The notes: generated from the sequence alone by a model not told the origin. DNA of 57,374 nucleotides, filler included, from Platydemus manokwari (GCA_037951405.1; 6 parts of 6 records of this genome joined end to end with filler, not necessarily neighbours in it); one strand, 5' to 3'. Shown: positions 36,639 to 46,500, counted from the first letter of the whole stretch. Translations and numbers: made by a program.

Positions 36639-39600
36639 GAAAGTTCAAGGAAGTGGGTGGAATATATTTGAGATAGGAAGCATAATAATAAATATTTCAA
36701 AGATAAATGTTCTTGTAGGTCGAAGTTAGTTACCTTTACCTTTTCGAAGTAATTCTATAGTAAATGTAGAAAAATATGATAAGAGATGTTTTCTATATTC
36801 AATATTAGCACACTTATTCCCAATTTCTTCTAGATCTAATCCAAATAGACCAGGACATTACAATAGACATTTTAATGCAATAAATATAAAGGATTTATCT
36901 TTTCCAACACCAATTCAATAAATCAAGAAGTTTGAGAAAAATAATAATTTTAAAATAAATGTTTGTGAATTGACAAAAAATATCGCAAGTAAAAAATATA
37001 AATGGAAATAACATTCGAAAATATTCCGAAAGTAAAGATTATCAAATTCAACCAATTTATATATCTCGGAGAGAAGGTTATACTCAAAATATAAAACTTC
37101 TATAATTAGAAAAAGAAAGAATAACACACTATGTTTATATAAAAAACTTTAAAAAGTTATTAAAAGGTGATATAAGTTATAGATTAAGAAATGATGACAA
37201 TCTAAACATCTGTGAAAGATGTTGATCCTATTTTGTAAAAGAAAACGGTTTTATAAATCATCAAAGAATTTGTGGCAAAAACGGAAAAAAAATTGTAAAA
37301 TTGGCTATGCCTTTAAAATATAAAGATTCAAAAGTATGTAATAAATGTAGAGAGAAAGAAGAATGTAATTGTGATATTCTAAAGTTTAAAGGATATAATC
37401 ATCAAGTAATGCTTTCTTTTATAATAGTATCTGATATTGAATGTTTGAATATTCCAGTTGATATTCAAAAGGAGGAGAATACAAGAGATAAATTTAATCA
37501 TAAACCACCATGTGTTTATCTGAAACTAATATCAAGATATCCAGATTTAATAAGAAATGAAGAAAGATTTTATTGTGGAGAAAATGGCATAACGGAATTT
37601 GCAAGATATATCCTTGAGAATGAAAATAGATTTAAAGAAATATTAAACACTAAATTACAAATAGATATGACTGAAGAAGATGAAATTAATTATAAAAATT
37701 AAAACACCTGTATTTATTGCAAAGAAAAAATAATAAAAAACAAAGTGAAAGACCATGATCATTATTTACAACATAATAATTACAGAGGAGCAGCATGTTC
37801 TGAATGTAATTTAAAAGCAAGACAACCAAAAGACTTTCCATTTTATTTTCATAATGGATTTAAGTATGATTTCCATCTAATAATAAAAGATCTAGCAAGA
37901 GAAATAAATCAAATTGAAAGGCTAAAAGATTTAAATATATTACCGCTAACAGAAGAAATTTATATTTCCTTCAATTATTGATGTATAAGATTTACGGATA
38001 GTTTAAGATTATTTCAAAACTCATTACATAAAATAAGTAAATCAATGAAAGATGAAGAATTTATAGAGTTAAGAAAAGAATTCACTGATGAAAACCTAAA
38101 ATTGATGAAAGCTAAAGGAGTTTATCCTCATCAATATATTTCTTCTTTTAACACATTAAATGAATTAAATTTACCACCGATTGAAGCATTTTATTCTCAT
38201 CAATATTAAGAAGGAATAACAAATGAAGAATATAAAAGAGCAAAAGATATCTGGAATAAATTCAATTGTAAAAACTTATGGGATTATACAATCTTATATT
38301 TAAAACAGGATGTTAACATTCTAGCTGATGCAATTGAATCTTTTAGACCTAATTATATAAAACAAAGAAATCTAGATCCAGCCCATTATGTTTCATCCCC
38401 ATCTTTAACATGGGAATCAGGATTAAAAGAGACAAACATAGAACTAGAATTACTAAAAGATCAATCAATGTGTGAAATTATAGAAGAAGAAATAAGAGGT
38501 GGTATTTCATCAGTAATGGGAAGAAGACACGTAAAAGCTAATAACAAACTTACTAATAAAGGATATCAAAATTTTAGAATTCTAGATAAGTTTGAATTTG
38601 AAGCAATAATGAAAAAAATTAAAACAAAAAGCAACCCAGATTTCTCTGAGATGCTTAAACCAAACTATTTAATGTATTTAGATGCTAATAACTTATATGG
38701 TTGGGCAATGTCCGAGCCTTTACCTTTTAATAAGTTTAAATGGGTTTCTGATAAAACTTTGTTATTTTAACTTAAATTTAAATATTCTTGAAAACCATAT
38801 CATGTCAATTAAAAGAGAATCTTCAAAAGGAATGATTTTAGAGATTGAACTTGAATACACGAATGAAAGTTAAATGTAGATAAAGGATTTCCCATTAGCC
38901 CCAGAAAAAAAGACAGTGGATTTTAACATGTTTGGTGAAGGACAGAAAGAAAAGATAATTCAAGAAAAGATTGTGTTAAGTGAATTACTTATTTGTGATC
39001 AAACTGATAAAACAAATTATGTTGTTCACTATAGAAATCTTCAGTTTTATTTAAAACAGGGAATGAAAATCAAAAGAGTAAATAGAATATTAAAGTTTCA
39101 ACAAAAACCATGGTTAAAAGAATATATTCAAATGAATACAGATCTAAGAACCAAAGGCACAAGTGACTTTGAAAAAGATATCTGGAAACTTATGAATAAT
39201 TCTTTCTTTGGAAAAACGATGGAAAATATAAGAAAAAGAGAAAACATAAAACTGTTCTCATCTTCAAATAAAGCAAGAAAACAAAATACAAAACCAAACT
39301 TTAAAAGATTCACAAGGTTTTCCGATAATTTATTCGAAATTCATTATCTTAAAGGGCAAGTAAAACTCAATAAACCTATTTATTTAGGATTCTGTGCCTT
39401 GGAACTAAGTAAGTTATTGATGTATGAGTTTTATTATTATAGATTAAAGCTAAAATGGAAAGAGAACATTGAATTTCCATATATGAACACAGACTCCTCA
39501 ATGCTAAATATAAAAACTAAAGATCTTTATGATGATATTTTGAATGATGAAGACTTAAGAAAAGACTTAGACTTCTCAGATTATCCTAAAAATCATCAAT

Positions 39601-39890
39601 TATTTGATACAAAAAATAAAAAAGTTTCAGGCTAATTTAAAGATGAATTTAATGGAATGATTTTCAATGAATGGATAGCAATTAAATCAAAAAATTATTG
39701 CTACGTTTTAAATGAAGGATGCTTCAAGTCAAAAGACAAAGGAATCTAGTAAAGGAATGTAGTAATAAAAACAATTATCAAAATACAGCTTTTATATTCA
39801 GGTATTAAAAACAAATAAATGAGCTCTACTTTACTTTGATCAAAAAGGATTTATTTGCTAGGATTGAATTAATACTAAACCGTTCGGTAT
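36639..39890 (+). pseudogene. Polinton/Maverick-type protein-primed family B DNA polymerase with inserted endonuclease VII domain, disrupted
   Basis: In order: GSGW, CFLYSILAHL, ExoI IVSDIEC, Endo VII CIYC..KDHDHYLQHNNYRGAACSECNL, ExoII FHNGFKYDFHLII, KGVYPHQY, ExoIII YLKQDVNILAD, IRGGIS, motif A YLDANNLYGWAMS, motif B KLMNNSFFGK, motif C YMNTDS. Many stops and frameshifts; no introns seen. Confidence 0.93.
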
Positions 39891-40460
39891 TTTATTCAGC
39901 CACATTAAATTTTTATTCACAATTTTTTTTCTATTTTTTGTTATAATTTTTTATAATAATTTTTGAAATATAATTTCTACGCGTTTTCATCAATCTCGTC
40001 TCACTTGACCTTTTAACCTGAACAGACTTTTCCACCAAAATATCAAAAACGTCGTTGTTGATTATATTCGAAAAGTTCATTATAATTGTTTAATAAAATT
40101 ATAATATTAACGACATAAGAGCATTTGTCATTATTGTTATTATTGATTTATTTTAACAGTCAGCAAAAATTAATAGATTATCAATTTTATTTATAGATTA
40201 AAAAACAGATCAATATAAACATTTAAATAATTTAATTAATCGAAACAATGAAAAAATATTAATATAAAATTGATAATATTATTAAATAGGTTAAATGATA
40301 TTGATATTTATGCACATTTATATAAAGAAAATAATAAATTACAAAACCACAACATTTATTTATCAACCACGCAAGCAATTCAGTACACTGTAATATTATC
40401 CAACTTGTTTATTTCAAGATACGACTCACCCACTACCACTTGTCTGTTCAGTCAGTTGTT

Positions 40461-40466
40461 TATAAA
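40461..40466 (+). promoter_or_regulatory. Putative TATA box of peptide gene A1
   Basis: TATAAAGGTTGACTATT upstream of A1 is conserved as TATATAAGGTTGAGTATT upstream of paralog A2 (46340-46323), at nearly the same distance from the ATG. Confidence 0.5.
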
Positions 40467-40492
40467 GGTTGACTATTAGCCTACAAAATTCA

Positions 40493-40826
40493 ATGATGAA
40501 ATCCGTTATTATTCTCTCTCTATTAATTGTGTTATTCAAATGTCACGAAGCAATTGAAGAAGTGAATTCTGATGAGACTGAGTTTGAAGATCTGTCAATG
40601 AAAGAATTGGAAGATGGTTTGTTTGATTTATTCATTCGAATAATAATTGATTTTAGATTTAGAAGAACAAGTCGAGATTCAAGAAAAACTTTTAGGTAAA
40701 TGTAAACCGAAAGTTTATAAATGTCCAAATCATCTGAAATATAATTGCAAAATATGCGTTTTTAAACGAAAACGCAAGGGATTATTTTGTAAAAAAACCG
40801 GTCATATAATTTGTATTCATAGATAA
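40493..40826 (+). CDS. Secreted cysteine-rich prepropeptide A1 (97 aa; exons 40493-40616, 40657-40826)
   Basis: MMKSVIILSLLIVLFKCHEAIEEVNSDETEFEDLSMKELED|DLEEQVEIQEKLLGKCKPKVYKCPNHLKYNCKICVFKRKRKGLFCKKTGHIICIHR*. One 40-nt phase-1 GT-AG intron. The structure is supported by the paralog at 45971-46307. Confidence 0.88.
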
Positions 40827-41699
40827 TAAATATTGGTACAGTTATGTGTGATTTTGTTTTAATTTTTAAGCACTTGTTCTAATTAATAAATATTCGATGT
40901 TTTAGATATTTCTTATATTCTCATAAAATGACTACATTTTATTTATTGGATAATATTAGTGCGACCTTATTTCAAAATCCAATTGCACCGCAATTATGAT
41001 GTGGTGTTTGCAGACCCTTTAAATGATTCTGTTGTGTAATATGTTTTAAAATATATTTTCATTAGCAAAACATTTAAGGATATCTCTAATATTTTAATAA
41101 ATCTTTTATATATACTAGTAAAATAGCATTAAAATTTGTTCTTCACAAAACTACAAAATGTTGTGATTGAATGAGAAAAATTATTAGTTGATTGTTTTAT
41201 ATAATTGTTTCGTGGCATTTGAAGAACACGATTAATAGACAGAGACTAATAGCGAATTTCATCATTGGACTTTGTAGTCTAATAGTCTAAATGGCGCGAT
41301 GATAGATAGTGGTAATTATTAATTATAGCTGGTAATATATATATATATATTTTCTTCAATAATAACTGTATGTAATAAGTCATGTTACTTATTTAAATTG
41401 TTCGAATCTTAATACATTTTTTGAGTTCCGGTTTTTCTCACTACTGTAGTAGTTTTTTTTGTTTATTATTCTCTACCGATAATAGCTTCTTGACTCTAAA
41501 TATTTCTTAGCTGTGGGGACTTATAGCAATGACGGCATACTATGAAAAAAACATTTTTACAGTGCCCCTTAGCAATTGAAGAATTGAAAACAATTGACAC
41601 AAATAAAAATTTAAAAGTGCCATTCAGAATTTAAAAATCGCAATAAATTTAGCCCGATTATCAAAAATGAAATGATCAGTCTTGTCGTTGTCCACGGTT

Positions 41700-43730
41700 A
41701 ATTTAAGAAAGACATCGGTATGATGATTATAAAACTCCAAGTCAATTTTTATTTTCCTGTTTTTCTGGCAGCGAACTGAGTTTTGGTCCACTATGTTGCT
41801 GCAGATGATGATTTCTCAGTGAGCAGTTTGTCTGATATCCAGAGTAGCGCAGTTTTTAAGTCTTTTGAGTTGGTCACTCGGTGTTTGACGACATTAGTGA
41901 TATTATTTCGATGAAAGTTATGAAGTCATGATCCGGACTCATGAGGTATCTGAAGACTCCAACTATGCTTGTGACACAGTATTCCATTAGAGAAGTGGTA
42001 AGTCCGATTACGCCAAGTTTTGTTGGAGTGTAGAGAAAATTGTTCTTACTGGACTTTGAGCCGTTCATATTTAGAATTTTCCGTGAGATTAAGCCAATTT
42101 TCTTCTCAAATGATTGAATTAGTTGGCCGTGTTGGTCTGTAATTAATTTTTGTCAAACCAAATTTGTGGTTTTGATCTGCTGAATTCTGAGATGGAACGG
42201 TAATCTCGAGTGAAGGAATGTGTTGTAGGCCTGGAACTTCTGCGAAGGATGTAGTCTGAAGTCTGCAATAGCTTCGAAATCTGTGATAATTGATTCCAGT
42301 AGGTGTTCTTCATATATGGCTTGAATCATCTTGATGTAATTTTGTATTACAACCCTTTTTGTTGAGGTTGTACCATATGAAGTTGTGCGGCAGACTTGGA
42401 AAAGCTTCCTTGAAATCAATATTCAATCTCTGCGATGGTGATATCTTTTAGGTTTGAATTGTCCTCGTGTCTTAGAAGGTTTGGATATAAGTGCGCTGGT
42501 AGTTGAGACGGTCCCGGTTTGGAATAATGATCAATAATTTCTTTTAAACTTGGGATAGATGTTGGATTCGTTAATGGCATAATGCTCCGTATTGTTTTTT
42601 GGGCTCCTTTAGGAATTTATTCCGAAGCATGTAATCCGAAGTTGATTGATCACAAAATGGAGCACTGATGGTTAGGAATCTGGTCTGGTCTGTTGCAGTA
42701 ATTGCAGTTCTAGCAGAAGTGAGCATTTGTAATTCATTTGGGGAGGATTTTCATTTTTTAATTGTGTCAATATTTTCCATAGAAGGACGAGATTTGATAT
42801 CGTTTTGTTGATATCGTTTCTGAGTTGGGGCAAGACTGGAGCGAAGAAGACTAGAGAGTTACTTGCATAGTCCAGTAAGTGTTGAATGACAAAACAGTCC
42901 ACAGTCTGGTGAGTTCAGTTGCATCGGTAGGTCCTGTAAAGAAAATTCTGACATGTAGATGGTCTCTGTGACATCAATCAGATTCTGGAGGATGTAGTCA
43001 AGCTTGTTCGTGCTTCGAGAGAGGTGCTTCGTTGCCGGATCGATAAAGAATCTGCTTTGTTTGCTCGGACCTGCAATATATAGGTTCCAATGGGTGTTAT
43101 TCCATTGGATTAATCAGAAGGCACATCTCCAAGTTGCAAGTTTGTGGAATGGAAACGACTTATAGAATAATTGGTAATCGCTGTTTTGGATTGCTTTTGC
43201 CGGTTGAGATTTAATAAATATGTTGAAATCCATATCTGAAAGCTTGTTGGTTTGGTAGGCTTTTATAGCGGCACTCGATAGTTATTGTGACGTTAGGTCT
43301 TTGGTGGACAGAGAGGGAGTGCATTGATATCCGTATTGTTTGCTGAGTTGGTTGATCTTTGGAATTCAAGATGATATTTCAGACCAGTGACAGAGCGGAT
43401 AAAACCACAGAAGCATTACACTGCAAATTCTGATGAAATGTTGATGTTGATCATTTGATTGAAATGTCTTGCACAATTATGGTATTGGCAAATGGAAATC
43501 TGTACATTTTTGGGCACAAATTACGTTTCGCATTCGTCAATGAGGTTCGAAATGGCATCGTTTTGAGTAGCTCCTCCGTATAGTTTCGATAGATAGTGAC
43601 ATATTTGGATTTGTATTTGAGAAGGGTTTGATGTGGTTTGATTTTCTGGAGTAATATTTTCTTGTGTTGAGTTTTGAATAAAAAATAAAGAACACAATCC
43701 AATTATAGTCGATATAAGAACAAGAAATCA
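41700..43730 (-). mobile_element. Degenerate non-LTR retrotransposon RT region (probably RLE-type clade)
   Basis: Fragments LDYILQNL (post-QG motif), LLDYASNSLVFFA (decayed YADD), NYKC and FLYTPTKLGVIGL (LYxP..GGLGL motif). GC content is higher than the flanks. Many stops. Confidence 0.55.
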
Positions 43731-45970
43731 ATCATTAGAAAGAACTTCAGTTAATAAAGGTAATGCTGTTATTTCCCAATTAAGAATTCAAAAATAATAA
43801 TAAAATGGCTCCAGATCTTATGTATGTCAGAATAATACAAAGACAACGAGTTGGTGAAACACGATGAAATTAAAGTATTTAGCCCTAAGAACCAACCAAT
43901 AAATAATAGTCCTATATTTTGTGGCAGCTCCTGCTTTCAGTGGTCAATTACAAGAAATAGTAAGGCAAATTAGTGACCTTGATATTCAGAGAGGAACGTA
44001 TTTCACATGAAATCATGCCAAGACCGTGATCAATACATAAAAAAATTGAAGAAAAGAGCATCAACTTTTGCGCATCAGAGGAATCACAAAAATTAATTGA
44101 AAATATATCATAATGATTGGTCTCGTGGTAGTAATGCGAGTGATCATTTAGTTTAAAGTAAAAATAACGAAACAGCTTTTAACAAGAACATTGTAAACAA
44201 GTATCAATTTTTTCAGTTTAAATAATAGCCTTAATTCGCCATTACGTTTTTTTGTACAGGTTCATTTGTCGTGATAATGCATGATTTTCAGCATATAATT
44301 TTATTTAATAACGACATATATTAGGCTATCTACTGAACAAATTCAATCAATAAATTACTGAATATTGATTTTTGAATAAAATCAATCTCGGATTTGAGAA
44401 GACAATAAAATAGCTGTGGTTAGAATTTGTGATGAAGTGTGTTTGACAACCATGAATTGCAATTCTTTACAGTACAAAATATGATGTGTTGATCAATGAC
44501 TGAATACCACAAAATAAAAATGGTTTAGCACCTTATAATCTTTATTTTAGCATCATTGTATGTCTATGCAATCATAAACACATAGCAACCAACAAGTCCA
44601 AGAGGACGTAAATATAAGATTCGAATTTCAAAATGAAAAGGACTGCACAATAACATACATTTTGGTCAATTATTTTAATAAAATGTCAGATTTTATTACG
44701 AAAAAAGAAGATAAAAAGTAATACTTCCATGGTGAGATTGTAACTCTACTCTGTTTAAAACCTCACTTGAAATTATACTAAATTTTATATCGCAGAACAA
44801 GTCAAATAATTAAAAGGTTGTATATATATATATTATCAAAATAGACGAACTTGATACTTCCATAATGAAGTTTATGTGGAACAAAATATTAATTGCAAGA
44901 GGTAGAGCATTGTATCATATTTGCATGATAACATATTCAACCAAAGGTTTAAGAATCCTTATAATTAGTAGAGGGATATAAAATGATTTGATTGATTTTA
45001 ATCATTATAAAGAAATTTGTAATCAATATATTGATATCTTTGTTTTAATATAAAGCCAAATTAAATCAGTGTGAGCATGCGATTCAAAAGACACTCCTCC
45101 ACTCAATCAGCAGTTATATTATTGATAAAGTTCTCTCATAATTTTCCTTATATAAAACATACCAATGAAAACATTATTCTTTAAATTCCATTCGTTATTT
45201 GTCATCAAGTTTGAATTTTACAATCATTGCTTAAACTGAAAATTCGAATAACGTATTCATATATACGCATTTTAATTATTTTTAGAAATTTTTTATTGCG
45301 AATCTTGATCGAGCATATAAAACAGTAAATATATTTTAAATTTTAATAACTTAATGTCCACAAATTTTTAATAATTTAATAAAATTTCTAAACATGTCGG
45401 ACTTATATTTTTTAAATTAAATTATAATTAAATTATTATTAAATGTGTTCCTTTAAATTTCCACATACTGCATATCAAAATGATGTTCTTTTACCATTTT
45501 AATCAACACATCCTTCAAAGATTATTCGCATATTAAATTTCAATAGCAAGTTCAGTATTGTTTGACCAATACAATTCATTATTAATGCTGATGGGGACAA
45601 TGATGAAAGGGACAAAAGAACAGTGACTGTTTCGGTTTTCAGAATCACTGTATTGTTTGTTCATTATTGATGTTGAAGATTTTAATTATTTATGATTAAA
45701 CATTTTCAAATCAATTTTAAAGCATAACATTTAAGACCCATAGTTAATAAGCTGAAACTATATCAAAATGGTTATAATACACTACAATGCAGATTTCATG
45801 TAAATAGATTTTTTCTCTTAATATGATGGTAAATATATTTGATTAAGATTCCGCATTTTATCCAAATTTAATAAAAAAAATAAAATTTTAAGTATTTATT
45901 AATTAAAACAAATGTTTTATTATACAACTAGCTAAATTGTGTTGTCCTAATGACAAAATGCTAATAGCTT

Positions 45971-46307
45971 TTAATGTTTTGGAATGCAGATGGCAGTACC
46001 TACTCTGACACAATTTGATCCTTCGAGTTTGGTATTAAAATAACATTGTTTACACTCATCTTCCCTAGATCTTGCACATTGCACAAATTTCCGACCACAT
46101 TCAGGTAAACGCTTTTCCAAATGCTCGCCTCGTTCTTCGTAGTCTATAATCTAATTAAAATACAACAAGTAATTTAAATATACCGTCTGTCATTTCTTTC
46201 ATAGTCAGCTCTTCAGATTCACTTTCGTCAGCATCGATTTCGTCAATTGCTTCGTGACAATTAAAGAACACAAACATTAAACAGAAAATAATGGCTACTT
46301 TCATCAT
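45971..46307 (-). CDS. Secreted cysteine-rich prepropeptide A2 (98 aa; exons 46184-46307, 45971-46143)
   Basis: MMKVAIIFCLMFVFFNCHEAIDEIDADESESEELTMKEMTD|DYEERGEHLEKRLPECGRKFVQCARSREDECKQCYFNTKLEGSNCVRVGTAICIPKH*. Same 124-nt exon 1, 40-nt intron and Cys spacing as A1. Confidence 0.88.
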
Positions 46308-46500
46308 TAAATTATATCGACCAATACTCAACCTTATATATAATTAATTGGCTAAGTACAAAGGTTGTGTGTCAACTGTAACTGAATCACAGTATAAAGA
46401 AAATCACAATATGAATGTTCAAAAATAATATTGGGTGTATAACCTTAAAATTTCGATTTGATAAAAGATGTCGCTGGGAGTATTGCTTGCATATAATGTC

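Follow-up and report, generated by a model that had tools for sequence, protein, structure and literature searches.

What do two small, convergent genes, lying 5.1 kb apart in DNA of Platydemus manokwari, encode, and do their products belong to any family already described? The genes, here called A and B, lie in a stretch of 57,374 nucleotides, filler included (GCA_037951405.1; six parts of six records joined end to end, hereafter the window). An initial annotation, made from the sequence alone, had described them as a lineage-specific secreted toxin or host-defence family with a six-cysteine framework that it did not recognise. We analysed positions 36639-46500 of the window, a piece with ~25% G+C overall and a block of 38-41% at 41640-43640. 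Besides A and B, which had both been annotated, this piece holds a third, truncated copy that had been overlooked, here called fragment C. We propose, with a probability of roughly 0.5, that A, B and C represent a small lineage-restricted family of secreted peptides, most likely of the host-defence type. The family is new, but it is of a very common and well-known kind, that of lineage-specific secreted cysteine-rich prepropeptides.

The gene models had been given as two intact two-exon genes at 40493-40826 (plus strand) and 45971-46307 (minus strand), each with a 124-nt exon 1 and a 40-nt phase-1 intron, and both the coordinates and the architecture held on re-examination. Exon 1 length, intron length and intron phase are the same in A and B despite a nucleotide identity of 73% over 245 nt (blastn). 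In the flanks, similarity between the two genes is limited to two functionally placed blocks, a TATA block and a 25-nt block around AATAAA. The predicted products comprise 97 amino acids for A and 98 for B. Both begin with MMK, followed by a hydrophobic core of 13-14 residues and then CHEA, and the translations also bear out the acidic pro-region and the C-x6-C-x7-C-x2-C-x10-C-x7-C spacing that had been described for the two genes. A six-frame scan of the piece found this framework in genes A and B only. Furthermore, the most hydrophobic N-termini among the ATG-initiated open reading frames (ORFs) of the piece are those of exon 1 of A and exon 1 of B, which are its two best signal-peptide-like ORFs. 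The mature domains had been reported as missing from the ORF track; in fact both second exons appear as short ORFs at a threshold of 40 amino acids.

A profile built from the two exon 2 sequences was compared with 1.84 billion representative proteins and yielded three matches, P0121, P0122 and P0123. The last of these, P0123 (UniParc UPI0006027642), is an unnamed singleton of 91 amino acids with the same layout: a leader, an acidic stretch and a C-terminal C-x6-C-x6-C-x2-C-x10-C-x7-C. It shares 48% identity with the A domain (BLASTP E 6e-9) and 32% with the B domain (BLASTP E 8e-5). Exons were joined only for the splice-model and A/B comparisons, while the Pfam, PDB, library and structure searches were run exon by exon. 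When spliced, A aligned with P0123 from the leader to the last cysteine, gap-free at the exon junction, with a score of 173, compared with 33.5 ± 6.6 for 500 shuffled controls and 49 for the unspliced read-through. This alignment supports the splice model and is the best available substitute for transcript evidence. The shared length, intron phase, promoter and poly(A) blocks, together with the existence of P0123 with the whole layout, indicate that the likeness between A and B is more than chance. Based on these sequence comparisons, we conclude that A and B are real, spliced, protein-coding paralogues. All three predicted proteins (A, B and P0123) have a hydrophobic leader, a pro-region and a C-terminal domain with an even number of conserved cysteines, as is general among secreted cysteine-rich prepropeptides, and the secretory layout put forward in the initial annotation thus applies to each of them.

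The two other matches, P0121 and P0122, are C2H2 zinc-finger repeat proteins in which each match covers just 16-23 residues, and we judge this resemblance to be a spurious product of chance. These insect-style repeats are picked up via a C-x2-C-[FY]-K-x-K-x-K-G stretch and would contaminate automated searches for the family. Judging from the alignments, P0123 is the sole true relative among the 1.84 billion representatives, in agreement with the restricted distribution suggested beforehand. When the exon 2 ORF of A was used in a word-based search of the protein collection, neither a candidate nor any product of these genes was found; the same search with P0123 returned itself alone. Metagenome scans with a protein pattern and a degenerate DNA pattern of the leader region gave no match, nor did a scan of viral contigs for the family, and no peptide relative was found in L001 or L002, two loci that carry relatives of a polymerase gene neighbouring A (see below). 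The literature was searched by peptide strings, UniParc number and cysteine spacing, which returned nothing relevant; the spacing led to fungal Zn2Cys6 transcription factors, which contain another motif.

Does the cysteine domain belong to a described family under another name? With E allowed up to 10, Pfam returned noise alone for the four exon peptides of A and B and nothing for P0123; Sina_RING, at E 0.18 and short of its cut-off, was the only match of zinc-finger type. Two profiles run against PDB sequences had no matches, and P0123 met AN1 zinc fingers among PDB sequences at a non-significant E of 0.6-0.8, without the His ligands. AlphaFold2 modelled the exon 2 peptide with a predicted local distance difference test (pLDDT) score of 62; for the 44-residue domain, a model of medium confidence drawn from three sequences (mean pLDDT 76) consists of a strand, a short helix and a long two-strand hairpin. 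Foldseek comparisons of two models with PDB and of one with BFVD gave nothing below E = 1. Since Foldseek is weak on domains this small, a new fold is not established. The initial annotation had found the framework unrecognisable, and across the libraries searched (Pfam, PDB, Foldseek PDB/BFVD, metagenome and viral) the predicted family indeed matches no described family.

The domain was also compared with known cysteine-rich classes. Defensins resemble the A family in having ~40-45 residues, six cysteines, a cationic character and a helix packed on a beta-hairpin, the latter as seen in our model, and in mammalian alpha-defensin precursors an anionic pro-region balances the cationic mature peptide, as in this family. 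However, the C-x3-C...C-x-C motif of the cysteine-stabilised alpha-beta defensins of insects, plants and fungi is not present in A, B or P0123, and none of these has adjacent cysteines, whereas the six cysteines of beta-defensins (trans-defensins) end in an adjacent CC. No defensin family appeared in Pfam at E up to 10, and no defensin chain turned up in PDB, whether by sequence or by fold. Inhibitor cystine knot (knottin) toxins have a knotted core of three disulfides and a C-C-CC-C-C framework, of which the CC pair is absent from A and B, and no knottin was among the Foldseek matches. In Kazal inhibitors the loop order is C-x6-C-x7-C-x10-C-x2-C-x17-C; the first two loops are of similar length in A and B, but the later loops are ordered otherwise, and Pfam, at E up to 10, showed no Kazal match. 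C2H2 and AN1 zinc fingers have in common with the family a short C-x2-C-[FY]-K-x-K-x-K-G-like stretch, but the paired His ligands that should follow the cysteines are absent from A, B and P0123, all of which have a hydrophobic leader.

The two parts of the precursor have diverged to very different degrees. The exon 1 peptides of A and B are identical at 23 of 41 positions, the figure given originally, while for the cysteine domain we count 14 identities in 42 positions instead of the 15 in 44 first reported; that six of the identities are the shared cysteines remains correct. At a synonymous divergence (dS) of ~0.68, the ratio of nonsynonymous to synonymous divergence (dN/dS), estimated from this one pair over 42-55 codons, is 0.38 for the prepro part and 1.01 for the mature cysteine domain, which agrees with the conserved prepro and variable mature regions described earlier. 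All six cysteines are nevertheless invariant across A, B and P0123 (n=3). With P0123 as the third sequence, nine changes in the cysteine domain are unique to B and two are unique to A (chi-square 4.45), a count that assumes P0123 to be the outgroup; on that assumption, it suggests that the domain of gene B changed faster than that of A.

The charge of the precursor is distributed just as unevenly. The acidic stretch (residues 21-55) and the mature domain carry net charges of -13 and +14, respectively, in A, and of -11 and +3 in B. The isoelectric point (pI) of the domain is 10.1 in A, 8.7 in B and 9.9 in P0123, while that of the pro-regions is ~4. It is known that in many host-defence peptides an acidic pro-region keeps a membrane-active cationic peptide neutral until its release. 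Since a cationic domain with a balancing acidic pro-region is seen here as in host-defence peptides, the most likely role is host defence or the control of microbes.

We therefore favour, at the even odds given above, a secreted host-defence peptide whose precursor would open with a signal peptide for entry into the secretory pathway, continue with a strongly acidic pro-region (~35 residues) and close with a C-terminal domain of 40-45 residues. Within this domain, which is predicted to fold compactly as strand, short helix and two-strand hairpin, the six invariant cysteines would be expected to form three disulfides. The acidic pro-region of A and P0123 offsets the charge of their very cationic domain almost one for one, and may act as an intramolecular charge neutraliser until release. 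Gene B would then represent a duplicate in which the mature domain evolved rapidly and gave up most of its charge. Gene structure, precursor layout, conservation pattern and lack of known relatives are what the sequences show; secretion, disulfide formation, pro-region removal and an antimicrobial role are what we infer from the predicted precursors. More tentatively, at somewhat less than even odds, we speculate that a new disulfide framework and fold define a new lineage-restricted host-defence family, that B is a recent duplicate freed from cationic constraint and gaining another target, and that the locus records birth, divergence and, in fragment C, death.

Several points weigh against a host-defence peptide of this kind. 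The leader ends in H-E-A, and a His at -3 is no classic cleavage context. No conserved dibasic or other recognisable cleavage site lies between the pro-region and the domain in A, B and P0123. The dibasic site, which had been listed as a feature of the family, does not hold as such, as a KR precedes the cysteine domain only in B, while A and P0123 have E-K-L-L before the first cysteine; the acidic part may stay attached to the cysteine domain. The domain of gene B, with its pI of 8.7 and net charge of +3, is weakly cationic. To these should be added the medium confidence of a domain model that draws on three sequences, the single short pair behind the dN/dS values and the outgroup assumed in the relative-rate count. 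Finally, a TATA box stands ~32 nt from the ATG in both genes (40461-40495; 46340-46305), a distance at which the 5' untranslated region would be almost absent and which is unusual for an animal gene.

A signal peptide, an acidic pro-region and a variable disulfide-rich mature peptide also form the layout of many animal toxin precursors, and the products of A and B could in principle be venom or predatory or defensive toxins that are made in a gland or stinging cell and act on ion channels or receptors of other animals. The conserved prepro part beside a mature part at dN/dS ~1 would fit such a role, as would the KR processing site in B. We nonetheless regard it as unlikely, since no similarity to any toxin family emerged in Pfam, among PDB sequences or by fold, since a K/R content as high as that of A and P0123 is found more typically in defence peptides directed at membranes, and since the family is small, counting two intact copies within 10 kb and, in the entire library, one outside relative. 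Endogenous signalling, with the products acting as a hormone, a neuropeptide-like factor or a cue in reproduction or development and the six-cysteine domain binding a receptor of the organism itself, appears to us quite unlikely. Its layout would be prohormone-like, with the KR of B as the processing site, and the fairly good conservation between the domains of A and P0123 (48%) is what receptor constraint would produce. However, divergence of the mature domain of B has been close to neutral, which would be unusual in a ligand tied to one fixed receptor; the family also has a very narrow distribution, and a signal would not need so extreme a cationic charge.

Two further explanations would deny that these are secreted peptides in use, and both appear to us far less credible. 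According to one, which we consider highly improbable, the ORFs are non-functional, be it chance ORFs, decaying pseudogenes or passengers of mobile-element debris. The genes do lie between the decayed polymerase gene of a virus-like transposon and a GC-richer block, copy C is certainly dead, and the products of A and B are missing from the protein collection searched. Yet both reading frames are intact across the shared intron, six of six cysteines are kept at a dS of ~0.68 with a prepro dN/dS of 0.38, the promoter and poly(A) blocks are conserved, a full-length relative (P0123) exists elsewhere, and the related element locus L002 shows no peptide similarity. The other, that the cysteine domain is an intracellular zinc-binding module akin to zinc fingers rather than a disulfide peptide, would be improbable in the extreme. 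It draws on the return of the C2H2 repeat proteins P0121 and P0122 by the profile search and on the weak likeness of P0123 to AN1 zinc fingers (E 0.6-0.8), but the former matches span only the 16-23 residues of the C-x2-C-[FY]-K-x-K-x-K-G stretch and the latter, from PDB, are non-significant. C2H2 and AN1 fingers are defined by His ligands that the domain lacks, Pfam gave no zinc-finger family that reached its cut-off, and all three proteins have a hydrophobic leader.

A host-defence role for the A/B family would have parallels among described peptides. The Hydra antimicrobial families periculin, arminin and HyCWR combine a signal peptide with a bipartite negative and positive charge and a cysteine pattern, and they occur as clustered paralogues with no homologues outside the genus (PMC10945409). 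HyCWR has six cysteines with a non-defensin spacing, lacks a conventional cleavage site and is tryptophan-rich (PMC10945409). A and B are alike to these families in the signal peptide, the acidic-then-cationic precursor, the family-specific cysteine pattern, the clustering of paralogues and the narrow distribution; in contrast to the tryptophan-rich HyCWR, A and B are devoid of Trp and P0123 has one. The comparison is by description only and concerns a likeness in working, not membership, and no named member of periculin, arminin or HyCWR was returned by any of our searches. The BCR peptides of aphids are described as small orphan secreted proteins of 67-108 amino acids, encoded by genes clustered within 20 kb, with a well-conserved signal peptide, a highly diverged remainder and six cysteines at nearly identical spacing, and with a role in the control of symbionts (PMC3574423). 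BCR peptides and the products of A and B are alike in that the leader is conserved and the mature part diverged while the cysteine spacing stays fixed; the description consulted mentions no acidic pro-region for BCR, and there is no sequence match.

If our proposal is true, A and B enlarge the already large class of lineage-specific secreted cysteine-rich peptides by a further orphan family. New antimicrobial or channel-directed scaffolds commonly come from families of this kind, which are also useful markers of recent gene birth, and this locus would combine a duplication, a mature part that diverged fast and the loss of a copy, all within 6 kb. No general concept is changed by this; its value lies in a catalogued family that is a candidate for structural and expression work. 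The features of the locus are collected in Table 1.

Table 1 Positions of the peptide genes, their conserved flanking blocks and the truncated copy, counted from the first nucleotide of the window
Feature	Position	Strand	Description
Gene A core promoter block	40461-40492	+	TATAAA at 40461-40466, ~32 nt 5' of the ATG; A/B similarity begins exactly here (blastn); putative promoter, from position and conservation
Gene A exon 1	40493-40616	+	124 nt; codes for MMK, the hydrophobic leader up to CHEA and the beginning of the acidic pro-region
Gene A intron	40617-40656	+	40 nt, GT..AG, phase 1; no gap at the junction when spliced A is aligned with P0123
Gene A exon 2	40657-40826	+	End of pro-region, 42-amino-acid six-cysteine domain (pI 10.1, 14 K+R, no D/E), stop at 40824-40826
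Gene A conserved 3' block	40868-40892	+	AATAAA at 40885-40890, 59 nt past the stop; shares 88% identity with B across 25 nt
Fragment C, truncated third copy	41203-41287	-	5' flank and leader-coding part only (22 codons, CHET for CHEA); convergent with gene A
Gene B conserved 3' block	45893-45917	-	Contains AATAAA, ~70 nt past the stop
Gene B exon 2	45971-46143	-	End of pro-region with KR site, 45-amino-acid six-cysteine domain (pI 8.7, net +3), stop codon
Gene B intron	46144-46183	-	40 nt, GT..AG, phase 1; 24/40 identical to the A intron
Gene B exon 1	46184-46307	-	124 nt; codes for MMK, the hydrophobic leader up to CHEA and acidic pro-region
Gene B core promoter block	46308-46340	-	TATATAA at 46340-46334; A/B similarity begins at 46340

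Fragment C is an 85-nt inverted copy of the 5' end of A, found by repeat search and blastn, with 87% identity to A over 85 nt and 78% to B over 64 nt. Beyond its leader-coding part, no pro-region, intron or cysteine exon was found. We conclude that it is a dead partial duplicate, younger than the split between A and B. We also considered whether the inverted repeat formed by A and C represents the ends of a small mobile element; however, no target-site duplication was seen, and gene B has the same block without a partner. In addition, an 18-nt stretch at 41571-41588 on the plus strand (wider limits 41554-41588) is 94% identical to the part of A exon 1 that encodes the end of the leader, and is either a tiny further remnant of the family or a chance occurrence in AT-rich DNA. 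A scan of the piece for bacterial promoters and terminators was set aside as irrelevant.

The peptide genes sit in repeat-rich DNA. Their 40-nt GT..AG introns and TATA and AATAAA signals, together with the AT-richness of the piece, would suit a eukaryote with small introns, probably an invertebrate animal. Between 41640 and 43700, a block of 38-41% G+C against a background of 25% has a strong plus-strand GC skew and no ORF above 88 amino acids. No significant Pfam match was found in this block, and Rfam was empty for the whole piece; our impression, and only that, is that the block is possibly a decayed retroelement read on the minus strand.

Upstream of gene A, at 36712-39746 on the plus strand, lies a decayed gene for a protein-primed family-B DNA polymerase. 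One ORF of 239 amino acids has 2489 relatives at E ≤ 0.001, with 44-62% identity among the 120 matches listed; most of the matches listed are unnamed, and the few with names belong to cnidarians, one spider, one crinoid, one fungus and a record assigned to Bartonella, a spread too wide to place the host. Compared with its relative in L002, the copy in the window is spread over three frames, with at least two frame changes and eight in-frame stops, and one piece of it gives a weak Endonuclease_7 match (E 0.002). In L002 (4025-18338, 36% G+C), the polymerase adjoins an A32-type packaging ATPase, and a 645-amino-acid protein with a weak tyrosine-recombinase match is also encoded there. Because the polymerase stands beside an A32-type ATPase in L002, the copy in the window belongs to a Maverick/Polinton-like, virus-like transposon, of which no other gene was recognised in the piece, and no functional link between the peptide genes and this element is seen. 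The closest polymerase relative among the matches listed, at 62% identity, is that of L001, a metagenome sequence of 2337 nt which, with 23% G+C, is as AT-rich as the window.

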